The notes: a model not told the origin generated them from the letters alone. A stretch of DNA of 64,000 bases from Piromyces finnis finn (GCA_002104945.1 MCFH01000049.1:186001-250000); one strand, 5' to 3'; numbered from the stretch's first letter, positions 20,067 through 64,000 are shown. Program-made: numbers and translations.

Positions 20067-22329
20067 TCATTGTGAAGTACTACTTGTGAAAGTACCATTA
20101 TTTAGAGTATTACTATTTTTACTATTTATTGATAGTCTATTTGATTCATTTTCTTTCCTTTTCTTATGTATTTTTTTTAAATTTCTGAATGCTGTTAGTA
20201 TTAATACAAATAATATAATGGCGATTACTATGATGACTATGTATAATATGCTAAATTTCTTCATTGACGGATTACCCATAACATTTCTTTTGAATAAAAA
20301 TATAAATTAATTTTTTATATGATTAATGAATACATTATATACATTATATATAAAAATAATTACATTGTTATATTTAATTTCTTGACTTCTTTTGGTATAG
20401 AACCACTTAATTTATTATTATTTAATAATCTTTTTTTTTTTTTTTTGAAGAAATAGGATAATTAGTAAAAAAGAAAATAAAATTACTTTATTATAATCAA
20501 TAATAGAATGATAAAAGCTAATTACAATGATTTTAAATTTGATAATTTTCCAAGTTCAGGCGGTATAGAGCCAGTTAATTCGTTTCTAGATAAATTTCTA
20601 TTTATGTAAAATGATTAAATAACAATAAAGATGATTCCAATAATAATATTTATTAAAATTAGATTTTTATATATAAAATATATAAGATTTTTATTTACAA
20701 TGTTTCTAATTTAGATAGATTTCCTAGTTCAGGTGGTATAAATTCACTAAATTTATTATCTGACATGTTTCTATTTCATTAATTCATATAGGAAAAAGAA
20801 TTCTTTAATAACCAATATCATTTCAGAGTTTATTATAATATTTAATACAATAGTTTTAAAGTTAAAAATTACAATGTTATTAGTTTCGTAAAATTCCCAA
20901 ATCCAGGTGGTATAGAGCCAGTTAATTCATTTCTTGATAAATCTCTATTTATAAAAAATATTTAATAATATTAAAATGATAATAATCAATAATCAATAAT
21001 CAATAATCAATAATCAATAATCAATAATCAATAATCAATAATCAATAATCAATAATCAATAATCAATAATTAATAATGAAATATTTAAGTAATAATTACA
21101 ATTCTTCCAAATTTAAAAGTTTTCCAAATTCAAAAGGTATTACATCACTTAATTTATTTTGATTTAACATTCTTTCAAATAGAAATAATAAATTAATAAT
21201 AAATATTATACATATATATTATAAACTGATATTTTAATTAATTACAAATGTTTTAATTTTGTTAAATTTCCTAACGAAGAAGGAATTGAACCTGTTATTT
21301 GACAATTAAATAATTCTCTTTTTTTTTTTTTTTTTTTTTTATAATTAAAATAAAAACTTATTAATAAAACAATACATTGACTATTCTTTAAATTAATATA
21401 TGATATTTAATAAAAATTATACAATTCTTCTAATTTAGACAAATTTCCAAGTTCAGGTGGTATTGGATCAGAAATAATACCATTTTGTATTTTTCTATTT
21501 CGTAATAACAAAAAAGAATGGGTTTAAATATGTATAATAAAATTTATTATTAATAAAAATAAAAAATATTTTATTAATTACAACTGTACTAAATTTGATA
21601 ATTTCCCAAGTTCAGGCGGTATAGATCCTTTTATATTATTTCCATTTAAATATCTTTTTTTTTTTTTTTATCAAAATAAATAAATGATAATAAAAACAAT
21701 AATAAAAACAAAAAATAATTAATACAATAATATTTAAAATAATAAAATGGTATATAATAGTTACAAGTATTCTAAATTTGTTAAATTTCCGAGTTCCGGT
21801 AGTATATAACTATTTAAATGGCATAATTAAAACTTTTATTAATATATACGATAATAGTAATAATGATAATAATAATTCATTACAAATATTTTGAGCTAAT
21901 TATATTTCCCAGTTCATTAGAGTCAGAAAGTATTAATTTATCTGTAGTTAATTGACTTTTTTTTTTTTTTTTAAAAAAATTGTAATATATTTAATTTAAT
22001 AATGTGGTAAATGAAATATCTTATAATTTATTTCAATTATGTTTCTTAACTACACAATTCTAGAATATAACTTGACAATTTTATATGATATCTACTCTAG
22101 ACTAATAAAATCTCTGAAATTGAATTAAGAACTAGTTTATATTTTTATTTAAAATCTTTTATTATTACATTTTAGAGACATGACCATTTGTACATGTAAT
22201 TCCTTTTTCTGAACAACAATCATCTGATTGCTTTTTACCTAATAATTTATTTATTACATCACAATCATTTTGGGCACAAGTAAATCTTAGTATGGTAATG
22301 ATATTAATTAATAAAATTAATATATTCAT
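20067..22329 (-). CDS. LRR receptor-like protein 1 (signal, Cys N-cap, 9 LRR exons, cap exon, TM, Ser/Asn-rich tail)
   Basis: Exon 1 22329-22169 reads MNILILLINIITILRFTCAQNDCDVINKLLGKKQSDDCCSEKGITCTNGHVSK. Then a divergent 72-nt exon (21955-21884), a 45-nt half repeat and seven 72-nt exons (e.g. YLNGNNIKGSIPPELGKLSNLVQ), a 66-nt cap exon, and a last exon overlapping ORF 20067..20279 (TM ILYIVIIVIAIILFVLILTAF). All introns are phase 2 GT-AG. Confidence 0.85.
20981..21070. repeat. (AATAATC)n heptamer repeat in an intron of LRR gene 1
   Basis: About 12 tandem copies. Confidence 0.9.
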
Positions 22330-22567
22330 TATTAAGTATTATTAATATTTATATAAAATAAAAGTGGAGGAATATTTATTTTAACATTTAATAGTTGTAA
22401 ATAAAAAATTTGGAAAAATAAAAAGTATGAAAGAACTCTTAAAGTTTAACCATTAAAATACTTTTTTTTTTTTTTTATAATTAAGATTAGAAAGAAAAAA
22501 GTTTAAATACTTTTATAAGACTTTAGTATTGAACGTTATTTATTATATTTTTTATTTATTACTTTTC

Positions 22568-22598
<31 letters not shown>

Positions 22599-23036
22599 TT
22601 TTAAAGTGAAAAAAAAAAACTTAAATTTTTATGGACAGTTTCAATAAAGATCATTACCATGGAAATATTAAAGTATTAATGTAGAAATACCAAAAGTTAA
22701 CCTGGGAGAAGTTAAAAAAAAAAAAGAAAACCAAAACAAAATCATTTTTTTATTAATAAAAAAAATTAATAATTTAAAATGAATACTTTTTTTTAAATAG
22801 ACTTGTAGACTTTATTTATCATATTCAATATTTACTTTTTGTATTTTATAGTTAGTTTACATTAATAGCATTTATATATAAATCATTGATAGAAATAAAT
22901 AATTTATAAAAGTATTTTAATTTTATGAATATTAATGTATTAATAGCATTAGTTGTAAATAAATTATTCAGATAATTAATTTATTATTATTATTATTATT
23001 ATTATGAATATTATTATGAATGATGTAATTAAGGAA

Positions 23037-25762
23037 TCAACTTTCACTAATGACAGATTCTTCAACATCAGCAAAAGTATTGACAAAAGCATGTCTTACA
23101 GAAACGGATACTTCATGATTATTGTTTATATACTTTTTTCCTTTTTTGTTTTTCCGGAATATTTTTATATATATTATTAATAGAGTTAACACTACAAATA
23201 TTATACTAATGATCAATAGAGTAATTAATAAGTTGTTATTATCCACGTTTAGTAATGGATTATTGGAAATAAACCTATCGAATAAAATAAAATTAATAAA
23301 ATAAATTATTATTAAAATATTGTTAACATATGAATAATAATGAATATTTAAAAATGTATTTCAACTATACTTGATAAATAATATTTATAAAATTATATGT
23401 AAATAGATAAGTATTATAAAGTTATATATAAAAAAGAAAATTTTAATACAATTTTATATTTAGATTCTTTATTTCTTTTGGAATAGAACCGCTTAAATTG
23501 TTGTTTGATAAAGAACTATTTTGAAATAAGAAATAAGATGTGTTAATATTTAAATAATCTATGATATATAACATATATAACATATATATATCTGTAAATT
23601 ATATGCAATTATAGATAAAAGTATGAATTAATATAAATATTGAAAAATTCATTACAGAGTTTTTAATTTGGATAGATTCCCAAGTTCAGGTGGTATTGAA
23701 CCCGTTAAATTATTATTATTTAAATATCTACAAGATGTAATGTGTAATATATTTTTAAAAAATAAAATTAAAAATTAGATAAATCGTAGTAATTATATAA
23801 TTATATATTTTGAAATAATATTTAAAAATAAATTCAATATATTGCTTATATACATTTTTTTTAAGTTAGACAAATTTCCAAGTTTAGATGGTATAGAATC
23901 AGTTAAAGTATTATTAGATAAATGTCTAGTATAAATAAAATGAAATATTTATGGTATTTTTAGTATTTATATAATAATTATTATAATATTATTTTACAGT
24001 TAGAGAAGGAACAAAATTAATTATTAATATTCATTACAAATATTCTAAATTAGATAAATTCCCAAGCTCAGGAGGTATGGAACCAGTTAGTTTATTATTA
24101 GATAAATCACTATTTTTTCAAAAAAAAAAACAGTAATGATATAAATGATAAAAGTTATTATGGATAACATATAATTTTTCATTATAATCATTAATAAATA
24201 GATTATTACAGAGTATTTAAATTTGATAATTTTCCAAATTCAGGTGGTATTGAACCCGTTAATTTATTATCTAATAATTTTCTATTTATATGCAAGATAA
24301 AATCCTTAATATTAATACTATACTACTACCATTACTATTATTAATAATAATGATGATAAAAATTCATATTTATGAAAATATATAATCTTTAAGTAATTAC
24401 AATATTTCTAGATTTGATAAATTCCCAAGTTCAGGTGGAATGAAACCGGTTAACGTATTAAGATTTAAATGTCTTTTTCAAATATAAATAATTAATATAA
24501 ATAATTAATATAAATAATTAGTTATTTAATATTGTTTATTACAAGATATTTTTAATTTTAATATTTATTATTTAAAAATAATTACAATGTCGTTAATTTT
24601 GAAAGATTTCCAAAAGAAGAAGGAATAGATCCTGAAAAATTACAATGACCTAAATGTCTTTTTTTTTTTTTTTTTTAAATAGAATAAAAAATAATTAAAT
24701 ATCAATAAAATAAATTTCATAATATTAACATTTGAAATTTAAATAGTATTTTAGGTTATTACAGCATTTCCAAATTAGATAATTTTCCAAGTTCAGATGG
24801 AATAGCACCCTTTAGATTTTTTCCATTCAATTTTCTATTTCGAAAAAATAAATAAAAAAAGAATTATAATAAATATAGAAAATAACTTTTATCTTTTCAT
24901 TAATATGATTAATTATAATAATTACAAATATTTTAAATTAGATAAATTTCCAAGTTCAGGCGGAATAGAACCAACTAAATTATTTCCAGTTATTTCTCTA
25001 TTTTAAAAATAAAATTAGCAATGATAATAATAAATTTAATGATTTTTTTTTAATAATTGTATTTATTATTGTTTTTACATATGTTCTAAATATGTTAAAT
25101 TCTCAAGTTCAGGTATTAAATAACTATTTAAAAATATATAATATAATTAGAATATTTATTATTTGATATAATAGATAATAGTAATTATAATGAAGTAGTA
25201 TTAAAGTATATTTGATTTTTACATATCTTTTGCTTTGACTATTTCTTCTGGATCATTAGTAATTCTATTATCTGTATAATAAATTCTTTTTTAATAAATG
25301 TTAGTAATAAATATTTAATTTATCTATAATATATATTATTTTGTTTTGGTATTTAAAATACAAAATTATAACAATTTTATATAGAAAATTTTCAATTTAA
25401 TTCTTAGAATTAATATGAACTTTTATTATCATTCTTTTTATGTTATTTTATTAATTCTTATGAAAAAACATATGTATATATCATTTAATTCAGAAATTTA
25501 TTTTGGTTATAATACACCAATATAATGATAACATGTATTTCTTAATGAAAAATTATATAACAAATTTTATAGTTCCAATTCATTACATTTTAATAATATG
25601 ACCATTCATACACACAACTCCCAATATTGAACAACAATCACTTGATAAATTTTCATTTAAAAATTTATTTACTATTCTACATTCTTCTATTATATTGTTT
25701 TGGGCAGAAATAATAGTTATTATTATTATAAGAATATCAATTAATAAAATAAATAAATTCAT
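23037..25762 (-). CDS. LRR receptor-like protein 2 (10 LRR-type exons, cap, TM, AFVNTFAD tail)
   Basis: Exon 1 lies within ORF 25583..25810 (MNLFILL...DCCSILGVVCMNGHIIK). Then 63- and 45-nt divergent exons, eight 72-nt exons between about 25.0 and 23.65 kb, a cap exon (SLSNNNLSGSIPKEIKNLNIK), and a last exon overlapping ORF 23037..23246. Confidence 0.87.
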
Positions 25763-26628: not shown

Positions 26629-28982
26629 TTATGGTATTTCACATCCACTAATCATCGAATCATCTGCAAAAGTATTTACATAAGCTTGTTTTGTTGAAAT
26701 ATGATTGTTATAATATGTATTTTTTCCCCCTTTTTTGTTTTTCCTGAATATTTTTAAATATATTATTGAAAATAATATAATAGCAAACGATATACTAACC
26801 ATTAATATTATAATTAATGCAGTATAACTATTTTCAGTATCCAATAATGGATTGTTTGATGTATATCTATTAATAAAATAAAATACAATATATAATAATT
26901 AAAAACGAAAGAATTTTAATTATATTACATAAACTTTTTATATATAAAAAATAATGTAATTACAAATTTATTTTTAATTTCTTTATATCTTTTGGAATTG
27001 AACCACTTAAATTGTTGTTAGATAAAGATCTATTTTAAATAGAAAATAAAATAAAAAAAAGTATGAGAATTAAATAATTAATATATTTCACTATTATTGA
27101 TATTATTGATAATATATAAATAATAACTAATTACAAAGTTTCTAATTTTGACAAATTTCCAAGTTCAGGTGGTATAGGACCAGTTAAATTATTATAAGAT
27201 AAATATCTATTCCCAAATTAAAATATTTTTTTAATAATTATTATAATAATTCCATATTTGTGTTATATTTTTATTAAATTAAATCATATAAAAGATAATT
27301 ACAATGATTTTAAATTTGTTAATTTTCCAAATTCAGGCAATATAGGTCCTGTTAGTGTATTGTTAGATAAATTTCTAATTTAATTAAAATAAAAACTTAA
27401 TAATAAATATAATTAAATCTACACAATAAATATATTATATAAAAAAAGATTACATATATTCTAAGTTTGATAAATTCCCAATACTTGAAGGTATATCATC
27501 ACTTATATTATTTTTATTTAATTGTCTATTTTAGATAAATATAGAAAATTTTTAATAAAAAAAATATTATATATATTTTATTATAATTAACATTTAGTAT
27601 TATAAATTTAATTACAAATTTTTTAAATTTGATAAGTTTCCAAGCTCTACCGGTATAGAACCATTTAATTTATTATTTAATAAGTTTCTTTTTAATGTAA
27701 AAATAATATATATTTAATAATATAAATAAAAAAATATTTAATAGCAGAATGTTTAAAATAATTTAAAATAGTTACAGTAACTCCAAATTAGATAATTTTC
27801 CAAGTTCAGATGGTATAAAATTGCTTAAATTGTTTCCATATAAATAACTATTTTAAATAACGAATTAATTTAAAAATTTAAAAATATGTTTAAGAATTAT
27901 ATGTAAATTACAGATTTTTTAAATTTGACAGATTTCCTAGAGAAGAAGGAATAGAACCAATAATATTACTACTATTTATATTTCTTATATATACATGAAT
28001 AATAATATTATTAATATGTGATATTTTAAATTTAAAATTATATTATACGAATTACAATTCATTTAATTTTGATAAATTTCCAAGTTCAAATGGTAAAACA
28101 CTACTTAAATGCTTTCCTTGTATAAACCTATTATAAATAATAAATTATTTATTTATACTACTATTACTACTATTACTACTACTAAAAATAATAATAATTA
28201 CAAATAATTTAAGTTTGTTAAATTTCCAATTTCAGGAGGTATATGACCAATTAACCCATTTCCACTTATATACCTATTACATGATATTAAATGATTATTT
28301 TTTATATTCTTATATATAAATGAATAATAATATATTTTTTTTATTACATAAAATTTAGATAAGTTATATTCCCGATTTCAGGTGGTATAGAGGCATAATA
28401 ATTTTCAATAATTAATTGTCTATTTTAATAAAATAATATAATATTAATAATGAACATATAAAGTAATATATACATGATTGTAAAATGATTATTTTAATTT
28501 TATTATAATATTATTAAGATATAAAACCATTATAATTATTATTTAAATTTATAATTCATATTATAATATGTATTTTATAGTATGAAAACATAAAATATTC
28601 ATAAGAAGTACAAACATAAGTGTTTTTATAATTGAAAACTTTTATTTTTTTTTAAGTTTATAAAAATATAACTATCCATTTATTGAATATAATTTATTAT
28701 CTGTATCCTTATCCTTATATATTTAAACCTTTAGAACTTTTTTATAAATATTATAAAAGCTTTATATTAATAAAATAAATAATTATCGATTCATTACAAT
28801 TTAATGATATGGCCATCACTTGAGCATACAATACCACTTTCTAAACAGCAATTGTTTGATTGAATATTTAATAATTTATTTACTATATCACACTCATTTT
28901 TGATATTATTTTGTGCAGAAATGAATTTTAAAATAAATATAGAATTAATGTGAAAAAAGAGTATTTTCATTTTCATTTTCAT
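26629..28982 (-). CDS. LRR receptor-like protein 3 (9 LRR exons, cap, TM, AYVNTFAD tail)
   Basis: Exon 1 is ORF 28794..28982. Nine 72-nt exons lie between about 28.4 and 27.1 kb, then a cap exon at about 26.96-27.03 kb and a last exon overlapping ORF 26629..26844. Confidence 0.87.
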
Positions 28983-30452: not shown

Positions 30453-32361
30453 TTAAGTAATACAAACAGGAGGATGATTTTTTGAACCAAAAGATATTTT
30501 ATTTTTATTTCTACTGGAAATTTCTTCTTCAACAATTTTCTTTTTTGTTTTTTTATATGCTATTGTTATTCCTGTAGCAAGGATTAAAAAAAGTGCAATA
30601 ATAATCAGAATACTTATTACTGAATTATTATTACTTTCTGTTTCTAATAATGGATTATTTGATATATATCTTTTTATTATAATAGGTATAAAATTTAAAA
30701 TAAAATTAATATTTAAATGCTTTTATTATTATATATTTACATAAATAAATGAAAAGTAAAAAAAAATTTACAGTTTCGTATTTAATTTCTTTATTTCTTT
30801 TGGAATTGAACCACTTAAATTATTTCTAGATAAATATCTATCATAAATATTAAATTAGGTGTTTTAATAATAAATTAATCATAAAACACATATTTTCTTT
30901 TTATTTTATAATATTTATGATAAATGCATAATTCATTACAAAGATTTTAATTTTGTTAACTTCCCAAGTTCAGGTGGTATAGATCCAGTTAAATTATTCC
31001 CGGACAAATCTCTATTTATTTAAAAATAAAATATTAAATTTTTAACATAATCATTATTTTCATGTAATAATAAATAATAATTATCATTGAAGTAATTATC
31101 ATTGAAGTAGATTTAATTACAATATTTCTAAATTAGATAAATTTCCAAGTTCAGGAGGAATAGTACCATTAAAGTTGTTTCCATTAATTTCTCTATTTCA
31201 TATATTTAAAACGAAAATGAAAAGTTTCAATTATAATATATTGTAAATTTGAAAAATAAAAATAGATTTTGAAATGTTAATTACAATATTTTTAAATTAG
31301 ATAAATTTCCAAGTTCAGGCGGTATATTACCACTAAAATTATTATCCTGAATTTTCCTATATATGATTAAGAAAATAATTTATATAATTAAATAAAATAA
31401 TTGTAATATATAATAAAATATAATATTTAAATACAGCGATTCCAGGTTTAATAAATTCCCAAGTTCAGGAGGTATAAACCCGCTTAACTTATTATTTGAT
31501 AATACTCTTTTAAGAGAAAATAATAAATTATAAATAATATATTTTTTAATAATAATTATGAACTAATTAATTATAATTAATTACAATTCTTTTAATTTTG
31601 TCAAATTCCATAATGAGGAAGGAATTGAACCTTTAAAAATATTATTTGGAAGACTCCTATTCCAATGTAAAATAAATATTAATATATATAAATTTTTTAA
31701 TAATATTTTATTTATTATTTACAAATTCTCTAATTTTGATAAATTTCCAAGTTCAGTTGGAATTGTTCCATTTATATATTTTCCTTGTATGAACCTAATT
31801 AAAGATATAAATTAAATATAATTTTTCTTCTATAATAAAATAATATATTAATATAATTACAGATAAACTAAACTTGTTAATTTCCCTAGTTCAGGTGGTA
31901 TAGGTCCAATTATGTTATCTCCATAAAAATATCTTTTTCAAGTAATATATGAATAATTAATACGATATAATGTCATATTTAAAAATAATATATTTAATTA
32001 CAAAAACTCTAGATTACTCAAATTTCCAAGTTCAAATGGTATAGAACCACAATAAGATTGACTTTGAAAATATATTTTTCTTATAAAGGTATTTTTTTAA
32101 ATAAAATTTGATAATTGTATATAATATTATTAAAATTTAAATTATATAGATAATATTAACTATTCTTTTTATTCATTACATTCTAGTTATATGACTATTT
32201 AAACATGTAATTTTTTCATTTCGACAACAATTATATGATGATTCCTTATTCAATAATTTATTTAAATAAATACATTCTTCACTTTCTTCACTAGTATTAT
32301 TTTGTGAATAAATATATTTTACTGAAATAAAGATAGTAACTAAAAAATAAAGTATATTCAT
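30453..32361 (-). CDS. LRR receptor-like protein 4 (8 LRR exons, cap, TM, SFGSKNHPP tail)
   Basis: Exon 1 is ORF 32176..32361. One 78-nt and seven 72-nt exons follow, then a cap exon. The last exon reads YISNNPLLETES...KKIVEEEISSRNKNKISFGSKNHPPVCIT*. Confidence 0.87.
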
Positions 32362-35285: not shown

Positions 35286-36221
35286 AATCTATTGACCTTT
35301 TAGTATTGAAGTAATTTAGATTTTGTTTCAAACTATCATTCAATAATTCTTTTAGTTGCAAAAAAATGGTTTTAATTAATTGTTTTATCTTTTAAGTTTG
35401 CAAGTGAAATAAAAAAAAAATTATAAGTAATAGACAAACAAAAATAAAAAAAAAGGTAAAATATATTTAAAATAAAAAATATTAAAGTTCATTATATAAA
35501 TATTTTTAAAAAAACTAATTTTTATTTAAAACATATAAAATTATTAATATTGAAATTATTATTAACATTTAGTTTTTAAAGTTTTTATAAACTATTTAAT
35601 GGAATAATAGGTATTACTAATTTATTCGGTAAATTTTATTTTATTAATACTATATATATTGGATAATTTTTTTTTTGAAACTTTAAGTATTTAATTATTC
35701 CTCTAGCTACAATTTATCAATTGTAATATTATCAATATTTTTTTTTATTTTAACATAAAGATGCATCTAATATTTAATATATTTTATTTTAAATATTATC
35801 ACTACAATAATGATTAAGTATTTATAAAGATCCATAAAAAAATTACTTATTTAAAAATATGATAATTTCTATATGAATATATATATACATTATACATTTT
35901 AAATATCTTATTAATAATATATTCTAAAAAAAATAAATATGATTATCAATATAATTATTAGTAATGCGTTAATTCTATTCTCTATATTGTATATATTAAT
36001 ATACTATCATATACTTAATAATCAGTAATAAAAATGTAATAAAATAATATTATAAAGAAAAAATATAATATCTTACATTCGGAAAATAATATATACTACT
36101 TAAACTTTAATAATGTAAATATCTTTATTATTTTAAAGAATTATACAAACTTCTACTACCTTATTGAAAGTTTTTTTTTTTTTTCCTAATAAAGAAAGAT
36201 TCAATTATATTTAAATCAAAA

Positions 36222-36771: not shown

Positions 36772-37038
36772 ATTTAAATCAAAAAGGAATAATTAAAATA
36801 ATTCTATTTTAAAGTTTTTAAAGTTTTTAAAGTTTTTTTAAATTTTTTTTTAATTTATTTTTAATTTATTTTTAATATTTCTATACTTAATAAGGTTTAA
36901 TAGAAATTTTTTATTTTTCTTATTAATTAAAGTTAATTTAAAAAATTTATGTTAATGTAATGTAACGTATTGTATTAACTCAAAAAATTGTAATAAAATT
37001 AAACTCTTCATCAAAAAAAAAACGACACACTTTTTTAG

Positions 37039-42781: not shown

Positions 42782-42824
<43 letters not shown>

Positions 42825-47371: not shown

Positions 47372-47409
<38 letters not shown>

Positions 47410-48806: not shown

Positions 48807-51412
48807 TTAATTAATATATACAGAAGGATGATTTTCTGAACCAAAAGATATTTTATTTTTTTTCTTTCTTTCCTCTTCTTCTTTTATAATTTCCTTTTTT
48901 GTTTTTATATAACCAATGACTATTGTTACAAGTAGAATTATAAAACATACTCCAAAAATTAGAATAACCATTAATTTAGTATTTTTTTTCGTTTTTAATA
49001 ATGGGTTATTTGACATATCTCTTTATATTTAATTAAAAAAAATTAATTTTTTTATATATATTAAAAAATAAAAAAATTATATTTATAATCCTATTATCTT
49101 ATTTATAAATAAATATAAAAAGATTAATTACAAATTCTTTATATTTAATTTATTAATTTCTTTTGGAATTGAACCACTTAAATTATTGTTAGATAAAGAT
49201 CTATTTAAAAAAAAAATACAAAAAAATAAATAAAAAATAAATTAATTAATTATATATAAGAATAATATATATATTTTTCCTATACATTTTATATTGAGGA
49301 TTAATTACAAGGTTTTTAATTTTGACAGCTTTCCAAGTTCAGGTGGTATAGAATCAGTTAAATTATTATTTGATAAATCTCTAATTTATTTAAAAATTAA
49401 ATTTATCGATTTTTAAAAATAATTGTTATTCTCATGTGAAAATAAATATTATATAATTGGTATTTTCAACAAATATTTGGTTTATAATTAATTACAGTCT
49501 TTCTAATTTAGATAAATTTCCAAGTTCCGGAGGAATGGAACCTACCAAATTATTATGATATAAATCTCTAACAATTTATAATAAAATAATAATAATTAAT
49601 ATATGTGTTATAGTATAATATAGTGAAAATGTTATATAATATATTATTTATGCTATTAACAGATATTTTAATTGAGATAAATTTCCAAGTTCAGGAGGAA
49701 TGGAACCACTTAAATTATTTGTATCTAATTCTCTATTCAAATAATTATGAAAAGCTTTAATAATAAATAATATAAAGTAATAATTGCAACAATAAAAAGA
49801 TAAATATTAATTACAATGAGTTTAGATTTAACAAATTTCCAAGTTCAGGTGGAATAGTACCAGTTAATTCATTCATGGATAATTCACTTTTTCAAGGTAA
49901 AATAAAACATATGTTAATAATTTGTAAAATTATTATTATTAAATATTATAGAAAATTATAAAGTACAGTCTTTCCAAGTTTAGTAATTTTCCAAGTTCAG
50001 CTGGTATTGGACCATTCAAAATATTTTGATTTAACATTCTTTTTTTTAGAAAAATAAAAAAATTAAAAAGAAATACAGTTTTATTCATATATTTAATTTT
50101 TAAAAGGTATATATATATTTTAAAGTTTATTACAATTGTTTTAATTTTTGTAAATTTCCAAATGATGAAGGAATTGAACCTGTTATATTACTTACAGGAA
50201 ATCCTCTTTTATTGAAATGCAAATTTTTATTAATATAAAAAAACTAATACACTTTCATATATTACAATGTTTAAATAATTACAAAAATTCCAAATTAGAT
50301 AAATTCCCAATTTCAGTGGGTAAAGGGCCATTCAAATTTCCAGCTATAAATCTTTTATATATATATATAATGAATATAAACTTTTTTCTTTTTTTTTTTT
50401 TTTACAATAATATTGTTTACTTTAACTTTAAAATATTTACAAAGTTTTTAATTTTGTTAAATTACCAAGTTCAGAAGGTATTGAACCAACTATATTATTT
50501 CCTGATAAATATCTGTTTTAAAAATTTTAAGAATTGAATATAATAAATATATTTATAATTATTGCTTTATTTATTATTATATTTTAAATAAAATTTAATA
50601 ATTAATTACAAATATTCTAAATAAGATAATTTTCCAAATTCAGGCATAGACCCTTTTAAATTTATATTATTATCTGAATGATAATAATATCTATTTAAAT
50701 AAAAATTATAGGTAATATTAATATAAAATAAAAAGGACAAATAAATCAATTAAAAGATTTTAAAAATATTTAAATTTATGGTTAATAAAATAATACTGCA
50801 ATATCATAAGGTAATATTAAATAATAATTAACTAGTTGTCATCATTGTTTGATTTATAACATTTAATAATATACATAAAGAGATGTACTATAAATTTTAT
50901 AATTTTATAATTGTATATTGAAAGGAAATTTTATTGTGTTAAATTACAAAATTACAATATCCAATATCTTAAAGTTTTATTATTTTTTGTTTAAAAGGTA
51001 AAATATATATATATATTTTAAAATAATAAATTTTATTATGAACTATTATTTTGATAACCTTTAAAAAAAAAAAAGTAAAAATAACTATAAGTAGATGGTA
51101 TAAAGGATAAAAGCTTTCTTCTTTTTAAAATTTGCTCTAGTACTACTATTCATAAAGAAATATACAAACAATAAACTTATATATTTTTTTTAATGATAAA
51201 TAACAACAACAATAATAAAAAACTCTTTACATTCTAGTTATATGGCCATTTAAACATGTAATTCCTGAATATTGACAACAGTTATACGATGGTTCTTTAT
51301 TCAATATTTCGTTTATATAAATACATTCGTCACTAGTATTATTTTGTGCATAAACAAGTTTTATTAGAATAATAATGATAGTAATTAATAAAGTTAAAGG
51401 GTTCATTATCAA
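48807..51412 (-). CDS. LRR receptor-like protein 10 (9 LRR exons, cap, TM, SFGSENHPS tail)
   Basis: Exon 1 is ORF 51227..51412. Exons of 81, 72, 69 and 6x72 nt, then a cap exon and a last exon overlapping ORF 48807..49016. Confidence 0.87.
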
Positions 51413-52577: not shown

Positions 52578-54563
52578 TCAATGACTATTAATTATAATAT
52601 TACTAATTACTGGAGTATTACTATTATTATTTGTAGCATATTGTTCTGAAGAAATTGCATTACTTGTACTATTTTCACTATTAATATTTCTATTATTTCT
52701 ATTATCTCTATTATTCAAATATAAATAGAGTTTTGCAAAAATAACTAAAAATATACATATTATAATTGGAGTAATAACAATAAATATATTGCTCGATTTA
52801 TCATTTAATAATGGATTATTATATGTGTATCTATTTGTTATATACAAGTTTATATTATTAAAATTTTAATATACTATATTATTAATATTATAAATATAAT
52901 TACAATTTTATATTTTTTTTCTTAATTTCTTTTGGTATAGTACCACTTAAATTATTATTAATTAATCGTCTAATTTAAATATAGATACATAAATTACAAT
53001 TATTATTATAAAAAATATAACCTATAAATATATAATATAACGTATATGAAATTATGAAATTATTACATGGTTTTAAGTTTTGATAAATTTCCAAGTTCAG
53101 ATGGTATAGGGCCGGTCAAGTAATTATTAGATAAATCTCTATTTTTATACGAAAAGAAATATTTAGTCATGTCATATGTATTAATATAATGTATAAAAAG
53201 ATAATGTTTATGTTTGATATATTATAACTTAGTACAGTTCTTCCAAGTTTAATAAATTTCCAAATTCATGAGGAATGGTACCATTTAATACATTTTGATA
53301 TAAAAATCTTTAAAAAGTTGAAAATAAAAAAAAATTAATAAACTACCAATAACTATATATTATTATTGATTATTTTTAGAAATAATTTGTTAACTATTTT
53401 ACAATTGCTTTAATTTTGATAAATTTCCAAGGGATGAAGGAATTGAACCTGTTAAATGATTTTCAGATAGGTTTCTTTTTTTTTTTTTTTTTTTTTTTTG
53501 AAATAAAATATATATTAATAAAGTAAATAAATACATTTTTCATAATACAAGTCTTTTAATATTTACAATTTTTCTAAATTAGATAAATTTCCAAGTTCAG
53601 GAGGTATAGAACCAGTTATATAATTTCTACTTATTTTTCTATTTCAAATAAAAGTTAAAATATTAATAAATTTAAGTTTAATAAAATAAATGGAATATAC
53701 ATAGGATAATCACAAATTTTCCAAGTTGACTAAATTCCCAAGTTCAGGTGGTATTGCACCTTCAAGTATATTTTGTTCAAAATTTCTTTCAAATGAAAAT
53801 ATTTTAATTATTATTAAATTGTGTATTATAATTTTTCATTTTTTTTTTAAAAAAAAAAGTTATCAACATTAAATTACAAATTCTTTAAATTCGACAAGTT
53901 TCCTAATGAAGAAGGAATTGAACCTGTTAAATAGCATCCATGGACTTTTCTTTTTTTAAAATTATGTAATAAAATTTAATCATTAATGAAGAAAACAAAT
54001 ATATATATTTCATAAATAATATTTAAACAATTACAATTCTTCCAAATTAGATAAATTTCCAAGTTCAGGTGGTATTGAATCATATATATATTTTCCTTGT
54101 ATATATCTATTTAATAATATTAAAAGAGAAATATAATAAATATATAAACTTTTAAAATACTACTTTTATTTAAAAAAAATAGTACAAATATTTTAAATTC
54201 GATAAATTGCCAAATTTAAATTTAACTATTTTTTATATATAAAAGAACCCACTTCAAAATATATAAAAATATCTTTTTTTTTTCTATAAAAATTTAACAT
54301 GGTATTGATTCGCATAAAATAAAATATTCGTCATGTTTATAACGTAATTATTTAAAAAGTTAAATTCATTACATTTTAATGATATGACCATTTGAACATT
54401 CAATTTCAGTATCTGAACAACAATTATATGAAGGATCTTTTTTCAATAATTTATTTATAACATCACATTCTTTATTATCTCTTTTTTGCTGTTGCTGTTG
54501 TTTTTGGGTATAAACACATTTTACTATAATAATAAAACTAACGAGTAAAATTAATATATTCAT
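52578..54563 (-). CDS. LRR receptor-like protein 11 (7 intact LRR exons, cap, TM, Asn/Ser-rich tail)
   Basis: Exon 1 is ORF 54369..54563. A damaged second exon lies near 54185-54250. Seven 72-nt exons between about 54.1 and 53.07 kb, a cap exon and a last exon overlapping ORF 52578..52847. Confidence 0.83.
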
Positions 54564-56157: not shown

Positions 56158-59100
56158 TTAATTCCAACAAATACCATATTTTCTTTGACATTTTTTATTG
56201 TGACTGCAGTAACTACTAGTAGTTCCACAGAATCCTTCTTTACTGCAACATTGACCTTCAGGACATGATCCCCATGATCTACCACATCTCAATTCACATT
56301 TATTTTTTTGGACACTACCAGAACATGTTCTTTCAAGTACGAATACATTTTATTTTTAGAATATATTATGTTTATATTAATATATTTTTATATTGAAATT
56401 AAAATATATTCAGTTATAAAAAATTAGAATATTATAAAATTTAGTACTATTCTCCAGAAAATGAATAAATTTTTTTATATTGACTTACATTTCATTTCCA
56501 TTTTGTAAACTCTTATCTTTTATATTTTCACAGTCAATGCAATTATAAGATACATCACTAATTATATGTTATTATTTTTTTATACATATTTTTATAGTTT
56601 AGTCATGATATTTACTATTAATATTAATTTATAGTATTATAATTTATTCTACTAATTTATATTTACAATGTAGTAAAATTAGTTAGATTTTCAACATCAG
56701 GAATAGGTCCACTTAAATTATTATTTGATAAATCTCTATATATTATTATAATTTATTTAATGTAAAAAAATATATAGATAGATTATTATTAAGATATATT
56801 ATAAATCCTTGTTAAAATTATGATAGCATAAAAATTTTTCTCTTACAAAATGATAAGTTCAGACATTTTTTCGATAGTTGAAGGAATTTTACCAGTTAAT
56901 TGATTGTTATTTAAATATCTATTTAATTTAATTATTCATCAATAAAATAGTTAATAAATAATAATTCTATTTTTATTTTAACTCTATAAATTATGAATAT
57001 ATTTAATATTTACAAATATTTTAAATTAGTCAAATTTCCAATTTCCGAAGGAATTTCACCAGTCAATTGATTATCTTCCAAAAATCTATTTAATTCATTT
57101 ATTAATTAATATTTAAAAGTCAAAATTATTTTTAATTTTAATTATAAAACTTTTTTAAATATTTTTAATATTTACATATCTTGTAATAAAGATAATTTTC
57201 CAATAGTTGAAGGAATTTTACCAGACAATTGATTCTCCATGAAATATCTATTTAGTTTAATGAATAAAACTTAGTTATTTTAATTTCTTATTTCAATTAT
57301 TGATATTTTTAATAATTTCAATATTTACGAATGTTGTAATGAAGATAAATTTCCAATGGTTGAAGGGATGGAACCTTTCAATTGATTATTATTTAACCAT
57401 CTAATATAATTTATTTAATATTTTATGAATAAAATAATACTCTTTATTTTTATCAAATAAATAATAAATATTTTTTAATATTTACATGTCTCGTAATGAA
57501 GATAATTTTCCAATTTCTGAAGGGATTTTTCCAGTTAATTTATTCCAAGCTAAAATTCTATTTTAATTTAATTATTTTTTCATCAATAATTTAACAAGTA
57601 AAACTTTTTTTTATTTTTACTTTAAATATAAAGAATTTTAATATTTACAAACGTTGCATATTAGTTAATTTTCCAATAGTTGAAGGAATTTCACCGGTCA
57701 ATTGATTATCGCATAAAATTCTATTCAATTCATTCATTAGTATTAAAAATCTTTTTTTTTAATTTCATAAATAAATATTTATAATATTATTAATATTTAC
57801 AAAACTTTTAAATTAGATAAATTTCCAATAACAGAAGGAATAGTTCCTTTTAATTTATTAGAATTTAACCATCTATATAATATAGTTATTCATTAATATT
57901 AATATGTAAAAAAGTATTTTTTTTATTTTTATTATTTTAATTATAAATATTCTTACAATTCTTGTAAATTTTTTAACTTTCCAATAGCCGAAGGAATTTC
58001 ACCAGTTAATTGATTAAAATTTAAATATCTATTTAATTATTCATTAATATAATGGTTAATAAGTAATGATTCTATTTTTTATTTTACCTCTATAAATTAT
58101 AAATATATTTAATATTTACAAATATTTTAAATTAGTTAATTTTCTAATAGTTGAAGGAATTTCACCAGTTAATTGATTATCATCTAAATATCTATTTAAT
58201 TCATTCATTAATTCATAATTTAGTAAATTAAAAATTTATTTTAATAATTATAAAAGTTATAAACACTCTTAATATTTACAAATATTGTAAGGCAGATAAA
58301 TTTCCAATTTCTGAAGGAATGGTTCCAGTCAGTCTATTTTTATCTAAATGTCTATTTATTAACAAAATATTTAATGAGTAAAAAAATTTTTAATTAATTA
58401 TATAAATATTTTTAAAATTTCAAATATTTACAACCAAACTAGTTTTTTCAAATTTCCAATAGTTGAAGGAATGGATCCTTCCAATTGATTAGAATTTAGC
58501 CATCTAATATATTAATTAATATTTAATGAATAAAAATTATTTTTTATTTTGATTATATATAAATTATAAATGTTTTTAATATTTACATTTCATATAATTC
58601 ATGAAGGTTTCCAATTTCTGAAGGAATTTTTCCAGTTAACTTATTCCAAGCTAAAGCTCTATTTTAAGTTATTTTTATTTTTATCATAATATAATAAGTA
58701 ATTTATTTTTTTATTTTTACTCTTTTTATAAATATTTTTAGTATTTTCAATATTTACGAATGCTGTAAATTGGTTAAATTTCCAATAGTTGAAGGAATAG
58801 ATCCAGTTAATTGATTACTATCTAAATATCTATTTTATTTATTTTGTTTAATAAGTAAAAAGTTATTTTTATTTCAATTATAAAAGTTTTAAATGCTTTT
58901 TAACATTATTAATATTTACAACCAAATTAATTTAGTTAATTTCCCAATTTCTGAAGGAATGGATCCAGTTAATTTATTACTATTTAAATATCTATTTAAT
59001 TTTATTTATTCATTAATATAATTAGAAAAAAAATTATTTCTATTTTTATTATAAATATTTTTAATATTTTTCAATATTTACAATTCTTGTAAATTTTCTA

Positions 59101-59633
59101 AATTTCCAATAGTTGAAGGAATGGTTCCTGTTAATTGATTACCACTTAAAAGTCTATTTTTATTTTGTAATAATAAATATTTGATAAGTAAAAATTATTA
59201 ATTAAAAAATTATAAATACTTTTATAATTATTAATATTTACAAAATTCTTAAATTGGTTAAATTTCCAATAGTTGAAGGAATTTCACCAGTTAATTGGTT
59301 ATCACTTAAGACCCTATTTAAATTTTATTTATTCATTAATGTTTATTGAGTAAAAATAAATTTTATTTTATTTTATTTTATATTATATTATATTATTAAA
59401 AAATATTTTTACATTTCGGTGATTCGACCATTCTCACATGTAATGTATTGATAATTATCACCTCTAATATTGCAACAATTAGCAACAGAATATTTTTGTT
59501 TCCATAAACTTTCAATAGCTTTACAATCGTTTGGTGCTGTTTCTTCATCACGTTTTGATAATTTGTCAATGGAATAAGAAAGTGAAGTGCTAGACACTGT
59601 CAAAACCAAACCTAAGAACCTAGACAGTCTCAT
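56158..59633 (-). CDS. Secreted LRR protein with C-terminal hevein-like chitin-binding domain (CBM18); 16 LRR exons, no TM
   Basis: Exon 1 is ORF 59409..59633. Sixteen 72-nt exons (consensus xLxxNQLTGxIPSxIGNLTNL), a 69-nt cap exon and a 69-nt exon (DVSYNCIDCENIKDKSLQNGNE) follow. Last exon 56329-56158 reads TCSGSVQKNKCELRCGRSWGSCPEGQCCSKEGFCGTTSSYCSHNKKCQRKYGICWN*, matching the hevein pattern CG...C...CCS..G[FWY]CG....YC. Confidence 0.88.
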
Positions 59634-61768: not shown

Positions 61769-61848
61769 AATATTTCCAAACTAAACAAGTTTCCTAATTC
61801 GAGTGAATAAATCTAACAATAAAAGTAAAGGAAGAAACTCGGTTTGAT
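61769..61848 (-). pseudogene. Orphan degenerate LRR exon
   Basis: AG...GT-bounded segment ending LELGNLFSLEI, with a frame disruption in its 5' half and no intact gene around it. Confidence 0.45.
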
Positions 61849-62197
61849 CTATTTTAATTCAATTGCTTTAAATAAACTCATTTTAGCTTAATAGTTTTGT
61901 GTTTATTTTTGTAGCTTATTCTACTATATATTATTTTTATTTATTTTATATACATTGTTTTACATTTAAATTCTGTATCTTTTAATTATTTAAAAAAGAA
62001 AATAGTTATCAAGTAACACTTTTCTTTTTTAAACTTTTAATATTATTATTTATTTTAATAATTAATTTTATTATAACAATACAATAATATTTCATTATAT
62101 AATAAATAAATTATTGAACAAAAAATATTCATTATTGTTTAAAAAAATATACATTATTAGAAATATGATAGTTTTGTATAATATTATTGCTAAAATT

Positions 62198-62470
62198 TTA
62201 ATTTTCACTTAATATTGATTCATCCTCAAATGTATTTACAAATGCATTTCCTGTGGAAATTGGTGCATTATTATTCATGTTATTAGTTCTTTTTTTGTTT
62301 TTCCTGAATACTTTTAAATATATTATCACCGATAACAGAATTATAAATACACTACCAACAATTAAAACGACAATTAATGAATTATAACCTTTATTAGTTT
62401 TTAACTGTGGATTATTAGAAAAATAACTTTTTATAAAAAAATATTGTTATGTACAAATTTTATATTAATA

Positions 62471-62551
<81 letters not shown>

Positions 62552-64000
62552 TAAATTTACAATTTTATATTTAATTTCTTGATTTCTTTTGGTATGGAGC
62601 CAGTTAAATTGTTATAAGATATAGATCTATTTTAAAATAAAAAACATATATAATTTATTAATTATTTTTTATATAATAGTTAAAAAAAAATCATATCAAT
62701 AATAAATATTTTTTTACAAAGTTTTTAATTTTGACAAATTTCCAAGTTCAGATGGTATAGAGCCAGTTAAACTATTATGTGATAAATTTCTTTTAAATAA
62801 CGACGATAATTAATATTATTAATTGAATATTATTTTTAAATAAATACATATTGATATATTAATTGAAAATAATTACAATTTTTTTAAATTATATAAATTT
62901 CCAAGTTCAGGTGGTATTGAATTGCTTAAATGATTTTCAGCTAAATTTCTATTTTTTTTTAGAAAAAAAAAAAATAAAATAAAAATATGACTTAATATTA
63001 AATATTATTAATTATTCTGTTAGAATAAAAAGTATAAGAGTATATAAAAGCAAATACAAATTCTCTAAATTTTTTAAATTTCCAAACTCAGGAGGTATAC
63101 CACCACTCATATTATTTGAATCAATTTCTCTTTAAATATATATATATAATAAATATATATTTTTAATATGTGAAAATTCGCTTTCAGAATAATTAATAAA
63201 ATATGTTAAGAATTGTTTACAAAGAATTTAGCTTCGAAAGTTTTCCGAGTTCAGAAGGTATTGAACCATTAAATTTATTTACAGATAAATCTCTAATTTA
63301 AAATAAAATAATAATAATAATAAATTAATAATTAATAAGTTAATATAAATGTATTATTAAATTAAATATATATTCAAATAATTACAATAATTCTAAATTT
63401 GATAATTTTTCAAGTTCAAGTGGAATAGGACCACTTAATTTATTTGCATTTAAATGTCTATTTCAAATGAAAATTAATAATTAGCAATAATAAAATATAA
63501 TCTTTTTATTTATTATTTCAGATTAGTTACAATGCTTTTAATTTTGATAATTTTCCCAAAGAGGAAGGGATAGTACCGGTTATATTACTAACAACAATTG
63601 ATCTTTTTAAAAAAATACATATATATAATTAATAAAGGTGAATTATATTTTTAATACGACAATATGTATATCTAGACAAACATACAATTCTTCTAAATTA
63701 GATAAGTTTCCAAGTTCTGGTGGTATTGAACCACTTATTCTCTCTCCTTTTATTTGTCTTTTTTTTAAATAAAAAAAAATTATAATAAATTTATATAATA
63801 TTTTCTAATATTTATGTAACAGTAATATTTATTATAATAATTACAGAAATGTTAAATTTGATAAATTCCCAATTTCAGGTGGTATAGGACCAAGTAATTT
63901 TAATGAATCAATATGTCTGTTTCAAATAATATTAAAATGGCCATTAATATATGTATTGATTTTTTTTTCTTTTTTCTTTTCTAATAATAAAAATATTTTA
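62198..64000 (-). CDS. LRR receptor-like protein 13, 5' part outside window (at least 8 LRR exons, cap, TM, AFVNTFED tail)
   Basis: Eight 72-nt exons between about 63.91 and 62.72 kb, then a cap exon. The last exon reads YFSNNPQLKT...LIVVLIVGSVFIILLSVIIYLKVFRKNKKR...GNAFVNTFEDESILSEN*. Confidence 0.85.
62466..62551. repeat. (AAT)n microsatellite in last intron of LRR gene 13
   Basis: About 28 AAT units. Confidence 0.93.

Follow-up and report, generated by a model that had tools for sequence, protein, structure and literature searches.

In a survey of 49 fungi, proteins combining LRRs with a transmembrane (TM) helix were found in only four, about one in each, the sample including no anaerobic gut fungus (Soanes & Talbot 2010, PMC2939053), and a 2022 review describes extracellular LRR receptors as seemingly lacking in fungi (PMC9119436). 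LRR abundance in anaerobic gut fungi was remarked on in 2018 (PMC6004548), and LRR receptor kinases have been reported as expanded in chytrids (PMC13618815). Secreted fungal sLRR proteins are predicted to resemble the ectodomains of plant LRR receptor kinases; these effectors include ZtLRR of Zymoseptoria tritici and have orthologs in early-diverging fungi, a chytrid among them (bioRxiv 10.1101/2025.08.22.671746). In Tetrahymena, LRR genes are described as arrays of exactly 90-bp exons (Xiong et al. 2019, PMC6564038). Alike in overall layout to the proteins reported here are the plant receptor-like proteins (RLPs; Cf-9, CLV2, TMM, RXEG1) and the ectodomains of FLS2, MIK2 and BRI1.

The window analysed is a stretch of 64 000 nucleotides from Piromyces finnis (GCA_002104945.1, MCFH01000049.1:186001-250000). 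A sequence-only reading of it had claimed an array of at least 13 co-oriented LRR genes and had noted that surveys of mostly Dikarya genomes reported LRR pattern-recognition receptors as absent from fungi. The latter statement agrees with PMC2939053 and PMC9119436, and the array itself is borne out by motif counts, DNA repeats and gene models: NxLxGxIP occurs 76 times in minus-strand frames (20416–63444) and 0 times on the plus strand, DNA-level repeat finding returned 105 copies of the LRR exon unit, and curated models place 13 genes, all co-oriented on the minus strand, in 20067–64000. Eleven of the 13 are intact, g07 carrying a nonsense codon in exon 1 and g13 being truncated at the window end; 11 models have an ATG-to-stop ORF, with lengths of 320–560 aa. 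Our preferred reading, to which we give a probability of roughly 0.7, is that the locus consists of tandemly duplicated genes for surface-displayed LRR binding proteins of an anaerobic gut fungus. Its features, in window coordinates, are:

g01, 20067–22329, minus strand: 12 exons, 355 aa; N-cap, 9 LRR-size exons and TM helix (open model, hydropathy); tail of 41 aa, S/N-rich, found in no other array gene.
g02, 23037–25762, minus strand: 13 exons, 387 aa; tail type B (KIFRKNKK...AFVNTFAD).
g03, 26629–28970, minus strand: 12 exons, 374 aa; tail type B.
g04, 30453–32361, minus strand: 11 exons, 342 aa; tail type A (KTKKKIxEEE..NKNKISFGSxNHP...).
g04/g05 identical tract, 30812–31311 in g04, minus strand: about 500 nt, with its counterpart at 33663–34163 in g05.
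g05, 33287–35285, minus strand: 10 exons, 320 aa; tail type A; one-base T insertion near 33833.
g06, 38056–40303, minus strand: 12 exons, 354 aa; type-A-like tail stopping early, at 23 aa.
g07, 40864–42428, minus strand: probable pseudogene with 5 LRR-size exons; type A tail intact.
g08, 42960–45064, minus strand: 11 exons, 345 aa; tail type A.
g09, 45703–48104, minus strand: 13 exons, 388 aa; tail type A.
g10, 48807–51406, minus strand: 12 exons, 370 aa; tail type A; RNA word share; model least certain at the first intron (540 nt).
g11, 52578–54563, minus strand: 10 exons, 337 aa; RNA word share; tail of 51 aa, N/S-rich, found in no other array gene.
g12, 56158–59633, minus strand: 20 exons, 560 aa; N-cap, 18 LRR-size exons, no TM helix; RNA word share; C-terminus of a Cys-containing cap exon and one hevein-like Chitin_bind_1 module.
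g13, 62198–64000, minus strand: 3' part, cut by the window end; at least 9 LRR exons; tail type B.

The genes share an exon architecture of one repeat per exon. LRR exons range from 66 to 81 nt, nearly all being 72 nt, and the introns between them are phase 2, since the AG/GT-bounded exons open with the base that completes a split codon. The curated models contain 139 introns (median 91 nt; GTAAxT donors, [AT]AG acceptors), their 5' ends being uncertain for several genes, above all in g10 (first intron) and in g04 and g05 (second exon). The number of LRR-size exons per gene runs from 5 (g07) to 18 (g12), against the 4–16 repeats claimed earlier. The four-cysteine N-cap that had been claimed is present in 11 first exons, where alignment gives the pattern C-x(11-17)-CC-x(5-11)-C-xx-G-(H/R)-(I/V) with all four Cys invariant and NGH nearly so. 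All 11 complete first exons can be read as encoding a hydrophobic N-terminus and then an (A/S/T)Q-type motif, a candidate signal peptide; by hydropathy, a Kyte-Doolittle window exceeds the threshold in 7 of the 11.

According to the Tetrahymena account (PMC6564038), the LRR genes of that organism likewise hold one repeat per fixed-length exon, with extreme phase-2 bias and tandem genes, and have grown by exon-plus-intron duplication and ectopic recombination; their exons are of 90 bp, against 72 bp here, and a layout of cap, TM helix and tail does not appear in the matching passages of that account. Because the Tetrahymena repeats are of a different LRR class and the host is a ciliate, the two exon systems are taken as independent in origin.

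The LRR consensus (position profile of 102 repeats), L(K/E)xLxLSGNNLTGSIPPELGNLSN, is of the plant-specific 24-residue class, and when the PDB is searched with a sequence profile built from relatives, the top 40 ranks go to plant receptor ectodomains. Evidence on the fold comes not from an array protein itself but from a relative, P0068, whose local alignments with most window genes show 45–51% identity. The ectodomain of its AlphaFold2 model has a pLDDT of 80–98, and the 50 best listed PDB matches of this model in Foldseek are all plant LRR proteins, for example MIK2, FLS2, GSO1, ERL, BRI1 and LRX8. Consensus, sequence profile and Foldseek thus all agree with the plant receptor-type repeat class proposed earlier, and the array proteins are, on the model of a relative, predicted members of the plant-type LRR solenoid fold class.

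Plant RLPs and the array, whose hosts belong to different kingdoms, have in common an N-cap ending CC..G(I/V).C..G(H/R)(I/V), 24-residue LxxLxLxxNxLxGxIPxxLGxLxx repeats, a single TM helix and a short tail that lacks a kinase. The resemblance of the N-cap to the plant motif is confined to its second half, whereas the first half (EC..IN.LL) is specific to gut fungi and unlike plant RLPs. The plant N-cap family LRRNT_2 (PF08263) gave no match at E ≤ 10 in 10 array N-cap exons, and none at E ≤ 0.001 in 6 full-length relatives. An island (loop-out) domain is absent from the array, its LRR exons being contiguous and without an insert. The TM genes lack a Cys-pair C-cap and an acidic juxtamembrane stretch, and their solenoids end in KEIKKLNIK-LxxSNNPLL with no Cys. 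GxxxG is absent from the 11 TM helices located by pattern search, which did not capture the helix of g11. Hence, of the proposal that these are genes of Cf-9/CLV2 type, the architecture and the repeat class hold; membership of that family is not supported, LRRNT_2, island domain, Cys C-cap and GxxxG all being absent. If their tails engage a cytosolic partner, the array proteins may be called 'receptor-like' after the RLPs of plants, which have no kinase either.

A census with the N-cap profile points to a different circle of relatives. Only 129 proteins were matched among 1.84 billion; the named matches are strong in gut fungi (three species of Neocallimastix, Pecoramyces, two species of Piromyces, and Anaeromyces; E down to 1e-22), weaker in three chytrid species, and include a single named plant protein. 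The 'L domain-like proteins' deposited in GenBank for Neocallimastix, Anaeromyces, Pecoramyces and Piromyces make up the family that holds the array genes; other members end in an EGF-like Cys-rich cap with a GPI-like tail, in MATH_2, in long disordered tails or in dockerins (PMC12421816). The locus had also been called undescribed: the family is indeed uncharacterised, but its relatives are on deposit under this name and LRR abundance was noted in 2018 (PMC6004548).

LRR exons of 72 nt and phase 2 also occur in loci of Anaeromyces and Piromyces sp. E2. In the locus of Chytriomyces sp. MP71 compared here, the gene for KAI8615718.1, an uncharacterised LRR-TM-SAM protein, has LRR exons of 72 or 144 nt, phase-2 introns in the same repeat codon (position L4) as the array genes, and a cap exon with the same end point. 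The protein shares with the array the N-cap pattern, plant-type repeats, a single TM helix and tandem units; the chytrid LRR-TM-SAM proteins have a C-cap with a Cys pair and, on the cytosolic side, a SAM domain, whereas the array genes have the 'SNNPLL' cap and tails of 23–51 aa, and the GC content of the Chytriomyces locus is 50% against about 16% for the array. The array genes show the features of a zoosporic-fungal LRR-TM family, namely the N-cap, the 72-nt phase-2 exons and an anchor after the LRRs. Because N-cap, intron position and phase match those of the chytrid gene, the array family is most likely an old zoosporic-fungal one, passed down vertically and not imported from plants.

A recent horizontal acquisition from plants or rumen bacteria, with subsequent amplification, is by comparison improbable. 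It could draw on the LRR region of P0068, which is 40–59% identical to plant LRR kinases as well as to Por_Secre_tail, SLH, Big_2 or fn3 proteins (putatively bacterial, on Mb-sized contigs), and on the GH48-dockerin gene next to the array, which has no introns and a GC content of 44%, a putative mark of bacterial import. However, repeats so close to the consensus give raised identity with plant-type LRRs of whatever origin; the array is intron-rich and lies at the GC level of its genome (15–18%); the N-cap profile reaches three chytrid species and only one named plant protein; and intron position and phase are common to the array and the chytrid gene.

The stretches containing g10–g12 are transcribed, as the share of their 31-mers found in four RNA runs is close to that of their exons: 0.11–0.20 for g12 (exon-only expectation 0.32) and 0.12–0.30 for g10 and g11 together (expectation 0.25). 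A further sign of transcription is a homolog, P0046, which is intron-free on JGI contigs of about 1 kb from two samples. Decay is visible in places. An in-frame TAA at 42311–42309, in the N-cap exon where paralogs have K or N, makes g07 a probable pseudogene, and the T insertion of g05 lies in its copy of the g04 exon 31011–30940, so that this exon is dead or skipped, or else the insertion is a homopolymer assembly error. It is nevertheless scarcely credible that the array as a whole consists of decayed, untranscribed repeats or contaminating plant DNA, a view that could cite the one nonsense codon, the one frameshifted exon and the one truncated tail. At the level of the present analysis it is refuted by 11 ORFs that stay open across 10–20 exons each, by the RNA words, and by the composition and introns of the host genome; the flanking genes, moreover, are hallmark gut-fungal ones.

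Duplication and, possibly, exchange have also left traces. The g04/g05 tract is 100% identical, introns included, save for a one-base indel, between flanks of about 70–78% identity; it is either a gene-conversion tract or an assembly collapse. In g12, and only there, successive exon-plus-intron cassettes are still alignable at the DNA level, with a tandem unit of about 160 nt. Overall, paralogs are 45–70% identical.

An anchor follows the LRRs in every gene: a TM helix in 12 and Chitin_bind_1 in g12. As had been claimed for twelve genes, one strong hydrophobic helix (Kyte-Doolittle 2.9–4.15) is followed by a short kinase-less tail, of 23–51 aa. The helix runs into a K/R-rich stretch, with 3–6 K/R within 12 residues, which by hydropathy suggests type I topology. 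A separate cap exon, as proposed, exists in g12 only; in the other twelve, cap ('SNNPLL'), helix and tail form a single last exon. For the g12 module the score is 28.2 bits, the cut-off being 27.8. The tails sort into two motif classes, A and B, which have been conserved among paralogs otherwise only about 50–60% identical. In a Pfam scan of the last exons of g02, g04, g10 and g13, no family rose above its cut-off, and the tails matched no known domain or motif, neither kinase nor TIR; Toll-like receptors, in contrast, have a cytosolic TIR. Among relatives, cytosolic MATH_2 occurs in two proteins (above the Pfam cut-off) and SAM in others, while Cys-rich caps with GPI-like hydrophobic ends were read by eye in P0034 and in the Neocallimastix proteins P0071 and P0073.

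The occurrence of the LRR module on GPI-like tails, chitin-binding modules and dockerins as well is no less compatible with a general role in binding or adhesion than with a receptor. Adhesion is therefore to be taken seriously as a rival to sensing, though it is less probable than the reading preferred here: the solenoids would be non-signalling adhesins or scaffolds by which rhizoid or zoospore attaches to particles of plant material, to the wall or cellulosome of the fungus itself, or to microbial partners, and the TM helix would serve as an anchor only. The chitin-binding domain of g12, the GPI-like ends of P0034, P0071 and P0073, the fusion to two dockerins in P. finnis A0A1Y1VM89 (PMC12421816), and tails that are short and free of known signalling motifs speak for it. 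Conservation of two tail classes, however, would be needless for a mere anchor, and the MATH and SAM relatives point to cytosolic partners.

The same anchors bear on the idea that the proteins are PGIP-like or decoy inhibitors of competitors' chitinases, proteases or glycosidases, or mimics of plant receptors in the manner of sLRR effectors, which we consider unlikely. The fold is of the class seen in plant LRR ectodomains, secreted fungal LRR mimics with chytrid orthologs exist (bioRxiv 10.1101/2025.08.22.671746), and g12 on chitin could shield the wall. Yet secreted inhibitors of PGIP or ZtLRR type are soluble, whereas 12 of the 13 array proteins are membrane-anchored and g12 has its chitin-binding module. 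The sLRR effectors, likened to the array here by description, are single- or few-copy, soluble proteins of plant pathogens; the array holds 12 membrane-anchored paralogs in a gut saprotroph. A gut fungus lives on ingested plant material, and suppressing plant immunity would be of little obvious value there.

Variation among the paralogs concentrates on the concave face, the convex face being nearly constant. Entropy exceeds 3 bits at x3, x5, x7 and x8, against 0–2 bits on the convex face, and the mean pairwise amino-acid difference over aligned columns is 0.71 for concave, 0.49 for convex and 0.23 for core positions (Mann-Whitney p = 6.5e-4). In five pairs, non-synonymous differences are more frequent relative to synonymous ones at concave sites than at other sites (Fisher p = 4e-5 to 0.03); when concave and convex x positions alone are compared, only the g02/g03/g13 group shows a significant excess. 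Within that group dN/dS at concave sites is 1.6–1.8. Throughout, site counts are small and dS, in a genome of 16% GC, lies near saturation. As evidence of recognition the pattern is weak, because any LRR family holds its scaffold and varies its exposed x positions.

For the sensing or immune function proposed by the sequence-only reading, the concave-face variation, the conserved tails and the MATH or SAM domains of relatives are circumstantial evidence. The variation would be expected if the array were a signalling pattern-recognition repertoire, whose paralogs sense different non-self (rumen bacteria, methanogens, viruses, other fungi) and, through a co-receptor or adaptor bound to the tail, trigger a defence or symbiosis response. 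Besides the concave-face excess and the subgroup with dN/dS above 1, such a repertoire would account for duplication, conversion and pseudogenes, as in immune receptor clusters, and for the MATH or SAM domains of relatives; a Pecoramyces sp. F1 gene annotated 'LRR receptor-like serine...', a candidate family member only, is among the ten most down-regulated with a methanogen (PMC6414434). We regard it as doubtful, since the four last exons scanned contain no kinase, TIR, death-fold or other signalling domain, and the paralogs are old (45–70% identity), unlike the near-identical, fast-turning copies of an arms race.

On the reading that we prefer, that of surface-displayed binding proteins, the array proteins would enter the secretory pathway and fold into a predicted plant-type LRR solenoid closed by the four-cysteine N-cap. 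They would be retained at the surface by the single TM helix (twelve genes) or, in g12, by the CBM18 module on chitin. Ligands would be expected to bind the concave beta-sheet face, where paralogs differ most, and the short tails, which fall into two conserved motif classes and for that reason suggest a cytosolic partner, may engage it for signalling or sorting. Gene structure, fold class, transcription, distribution and the way the paralogs vary are shown by the analysis; surface location, concave-face binding and any signalling are what we infer for these proteins. The family would have grown and changed by gene duplication, exon-plus-intron cassette duplication (g12 only), gene conversion, and the death of genes and exons.

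The array shows that some fungi hold an expanded set of LRR proteins of predicted surface location. Rather speculatively, zoosporic fungi may possess an old, expanded LRR receptor system, with one-repeat exons and modular signalling through SAM, MATH or motif tails, which in gut fungi would discriminate microbial partners from antagonists. If true, this would be a third independently elaborated eukaryotic system of LRR surface recognition, beside those of plants and animals.

Between 20416 and 63444, minus-strand frames contain 76 copies of the motif NxLxGxIP; the plus strand has none. Read from the DNA, each LRR repeat corresponds to a single exon, nearly always of 72 nt; since the first base of an LRR exon finishes the codon opened by the last two bases of the preceding exon, the introns are phase 2 throughout. 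In the DNA, the exon unit can be recognized 105 times. Gene models were obtained with a splice graph trained on LRR exons, with penalties, and were then curated by hand. This gave 13 minus-strand genes (g01–g13), 11 of which are open from ATG to stop over 10–20 exons and code for products of 320–560 aa. The number of LRR-size exons per gene varies from 5 to 18, and the 139 introns of the models have a median length of 91 nt, GTAAxT donors and [AT]AG acceptors. In g07, a TAA (42311–42309) is found in exon 1 where the paralogs have Lys or Asn, and there are only 5 LRR exons; g13 is truncated at the end of the window.

Exon 1 codes for a hydrophobic N-terminus followed by a cap in which four cysteines are invariant and an NGH is nearly so (alignment A1). 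In twelve genes the last repeat is shortened (66 or 69 nt) and is followed by one final exon, which codes for a cap without Cys ('SNNPLL'), a single helix of strong hydrophobicity, a lysine-rich juxtamembrane stretch and a tail of 23–51 aa. This is the layout expected of a type I membrane protein with its LRRs outside. An array of co-oriented genes with putative signal peptide, N-cap, LRRs, transmembrane (TM) helix and short tail, as proposed by the sequence-only reading, is thus recovered; the separate cap exon of that proposal is found in g12, whereas the twelve other genes hold cap, helix and tail in one exon. Two tail types recur: type A (KTKKKIxEEE..NKNKISFGSxNHP..) in g04, g05, g07, g08, g09 and g10, with a truncated version in g06, and type B (KIFRKNKK..A(F/Y)VNTFxD) in g02, g03 and g13; the tails of g01 and g11 are each unique. 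No Pfam family scored above cut-off in the four last exons scanned (g02, g04, g10 and g13), and a protein homology search with the last exon of g10 returned no matches. The helix-less g12 has 18 LRR-size exons, its Cys-containing cap exon and a single hevein-type chitin-binding module (Chitin_bind_1, 28.2 bits; cut-off 27.8). Its exon-plus-intron cassettes can be aligned as a tandem DNA repeat of ~160 nt, so that cassette duplication appears to be fairly recent.

Features of the window accompanying the LRR exons
318–1310, plus strand: ORF without Pfam match, 330 aa
3577–5049, minus strand: ankyrin-repeat ORF, 490 aa
8109–12635, minus strand: reverse-transcriptase ORF with RVT_1 domain, 1508 aa, LINE-like retrotransposon
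13962–16247, minus strand: Glyco_hydro_48 ORF with two CBM_10 dockerins, 761 aa, intronless, 887 bits
20981–21077: microsatellite (AATAATC)n, ~14 copies, in an intron of g01
62462–62551: microsatellite (ATA)n, ~30 copies, in the last intron of g13

The GH48, ankyrin-repeat and reverse-transcriptase ORFs are all placed upstream of the LRR array. The GC content is 14–18% across nearly all of 16–64 kb; a patch of higher GC (22%) lies at 36000–38000, within the long gap between g05 and g06. The Glyco_hydro_48 ORF, by its domains a cellulosomal cellulase, lies in the window's single block of 44% GC, a composition sharply unlike its surroundings. The pairing of GH48 with fungal dockerins in a genome of ~16% GC identifies the host as an anaerobic gut fungus (Neocallimastigomycota). 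No tRNA-like genes were found by ARAGORN in the whole window. Plant contamination was ruled out by composition, introns and flanking genes.

Expression was assessed from the share of sampled 31-mers present in sequencing runs of the same organism. For the g12 stretch, 97% were present in one DNA run. In four RNA runs the share was 0.11–0.20 for the g12 stretch and 0.12–0.30 for the g10 + g11 stretch, where exons alone would give 0.32 and 0.25, respectively, according to the gene models. The RNA runs therefore carry roughly the exon share, which fits transcription and splicing of g10, g11 and g12 as predicted. For a homolog of the family (P0046), intron-free coding sequence is present on JGI contigs of ~1 kb in two samples, and these contigs are read as spliced transcripts of the gut-fungal LRR family. 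A dead repeat array is ruled out by the open frames and the RNA.

The 86 repeats of the TM genes yield the consensus L(K/E)xLxLSGNNLTGSIPPELGNLSN, that of the 24-residue plant-specific LRR class. Structure was approached through P0068, the closest full-length match to a profile built from the N-cap exons; it shares 45–51% identity in local alignments with most window genes and 39–41% with g03, g06, g08 and g09. The ectodomain of its AlphaFold2 model has a pLDDT of 80–98, and the best 50 PDB matches listed by Foldseek are all plant LRR proteins, including MIK2, FLS2, GSO1, PSKR, ERL, BRI1 and LRX8. Similarly, the top ranks for a sequence profile made from eleven relatives are 40 plant receptor ectodomains, with some alignments extending into the latter half of the N-cap. 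Since plant LRR proteins come out best by both fold and sequence profile, 'plant-type', as the repeats had been called from the sequence, is apt for fold and repeat class. Assignment to the Cf-9/CLV2 type did not hold: the window genes resemble receptor-like proteins in layout, yet are not members of that family. Pfam LRRNT_2 gave zero matches for ten N-cap exons at E ≤ 10 and for six full-length relatives at E ≤ 0.001, the island domain is absent, the TM genes have no Cys-pair C-cap, and GxxxG is absent from all 11 helices captured by the pattern search. The repeats of P0068 are 40–59% identical to plant kinases and equally so to proteins read as bacterial surface proteins, because they are consensus-like; when full-length P0068 was the query, the result was crowded with plant-type LRR proteins, bacterial or plant to judge by their domains and names, and it does not decide the question of origin.

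Family analyses were based on the N-cap profile, which was searched against 1.84 billion proteins, and on the relatives that it found. Only 129 matches were obtained, several of them full-length. The named ones are from Neocallimastix californiae, N. lanati, N. 'constans', Pecoramyces ruminantium, Piromyces sp. E2, P. finnis and Anaeromyces robustus, and the gut-fungal matches carry the database names 'L domain-like protein' or 'hypothetical protein'. Weaker matches fall on the latter half of the cap, CC..G(I/V).C..G(H/R)(I/V), and include four chytrid proteins (one from Chytriomyces sp. MP71, two from Phlyctochytrium bullatum and one from Gorgonomyces haynaldii). A receptor-like protein from Solanum and a protein from Parabeggiatoa were also among the weaker matches. 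A homology search with the N-cap region of P0068 recovered the query alone.

In the Chytriomyces protein there are two units, and both combine the same four-Cys cap with ~7 plant-type LRRs, a C-cap with a Cys pair, a TM helix and a SAM domain. Its locus (MU614686.1) has a GC content of 50%. When the protein was mapped onto its gene, the LRR exons were found to be of 72 or 144 nt with phase 2 introns, which fall in repeat codon L4. The window genes have their introns in that codon too, and the end of the cap exon is likewise identical. Loci of Anaeromyces and Piromyces sp. E2 also have 72-nt phase-2 exons. That the cap and the position and phase of the introns are held in common with the chytrid argues for vertical descent among zoosporic fungi, against recent import from a plant or a bacterium. 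The deposited 928-aa Chytriomyces protein joins the two LRR-TM-SAM units in one gene model, probably a fusion of two tandem genes. Directly upstream, on the same strand, lies a third LRR gene, so that small tandem arrays exist in chytrids too; together these genes take up 218–1608 and 3001–6551 of the locus.

Paralogs within the window are 45–70% identical, and single repeats are recognizably orthologous from gene to gene (e.g. 'IQGK' and 'C..TGSIPSS'), which points to whole-gene duplication with some exon gain and loss. Between g04 and g05, ~500 nt including introns are 100% identical while the flanks are at ~70–78%, a signature of gene conversion or assembly collapse. One extra T in an exon of g05 inside this tract means either that the exon is dead or skipped, or that there is a homopolymer error. 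Taken with the nonsense codon of g07 and the short tail of g06, the tract looks like a product of birth-and-death evolution.

Variation along the repeat is uneven. Entropy exceeds 3 bits at x3, x5, x7 and x8 of LxxLxLxxN (the concave sheet) and is 0–2 bits over GSIPPELGNLSNL. In aligned columns, pairwise amino-acid differences average 0.71 for concave sites, 0.49 for convex x sites and 0.23 for the core (Mann–Whitney P = 6.5e-4), and in five gene pairs the non-synonymous/synonymous ratio of concave sites is above that of the remaining sites (Fisher P = 4e-5 to 0.03). Only in the g02/g03/g13 group was the comparison of concave with convex x sites alone significant; pairwise dN/dS at concave sites is 1.6–1.8 in this group. 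With dS near saturation and few sites, the pattern suggests, but does not prove, that a binding face has diversified.

The relatives carry the LRR module on a range of anchors. In P0034 and in the Neocallimastix proteins P0071 and P0073, an EGF-like cap rich in Cys and a hydrophobic, GPI-like end come after the LRRs (read by eye); some relatives have long disordered tails. P0068 and P0142, on JGI contigs of 1.3–2.0 kb, have the same N-cap and an LRR-TM-MATH_2 layout (34.6 and 41 bits; Pfam cut-off 32), in which the TRAF-like MATH_2 domain, a low-confidence part of the model, is predicted to be cytosolic; this layout would be that of a candidate signalling receptor. P. finnis A0A1Y1VM89 is described as a leucine-rich repeat with two CBM10 dockerins (PMC12421816, Table 1), an LRR module addressed to the fungal cellulosome. 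TM, GPI-like, chitin-binding and dockerin versions would thus display the module on membrane, wall, chitin and cellulosome. The best-supported reading is that the family consists of surface-displayed LRR binding proteins that are expressed, resemble receptors in layout, have a long history in zoosporic fungi and have expanded locally. The same range of anchors makes a role as adhesin or scaffold a serious alternative. That the window proteins may signal we infer only from their conserved tail motifs and the MATH or SAM ends of relatives. A putative immune-like repertoire is possible; its sole hint is a Pecoramyces sp. F1 'LRR receptor-like' gene, among the ten most down-regulated with a methanogen (PMC6414434), but this gene could not be tied to the gut-fungal LRR-TM family.

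Soanes and Talbot (2010; PMC2939053) found LRR + TM proteins in 4 of the 49 fungi surveyed, as a rule a single one per fungus, with no gut fungi sampled; fungal-immunity reviews keep citing that survey for the absence of extracellular LRR receptors, and a 2022 review (PMC9119436) has fungi seemingly without them. The absence stated in the sequence-only reading matches the literature. Its description of the system as undescribed stands in that no published account of the gut-fungal LRR-TM family was found in the literature, but relatives are deposited, LRRs were noted, without description, among the most numerous domains of gut-fungal genomes (Kameshwar and Qin 2018; PMC6004548), and LRR receptor kinase orthogroups are reported as expanded in chytrids (2026; PMC13618815). 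Secreted fungal LRR proteins mimicking plant receptors are the subject of a 2025 preprint (bioRxiv 10.1101/2025.08.22.671746). In gene architecture, a close parallel is offered by Tetrahymena, where, according to Xiong et al. (2019; PMC6564038), LRR genes consist of exons of exactly 90 bp with phase-2 introns between them; after Tetrahymena, the array is a second natural case of LRR genes made from phase-locked one-repeat exons.

At the P. finnis locus, a single cluster of a fungal genome contains at least a dozen expressed LRR-TM genes. Since cap and intron positions are common to the chytrid LRR-TM-SAM genes, the absence of LRR-TM proteins in Dikarya looks like loss rather than the ancestral state. 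The genes are concrete candidates for the sensing of, or attachment to, plant particles, methanogens and bacteria by gut fungi, interactions that bear on fibre digestion and methane output.
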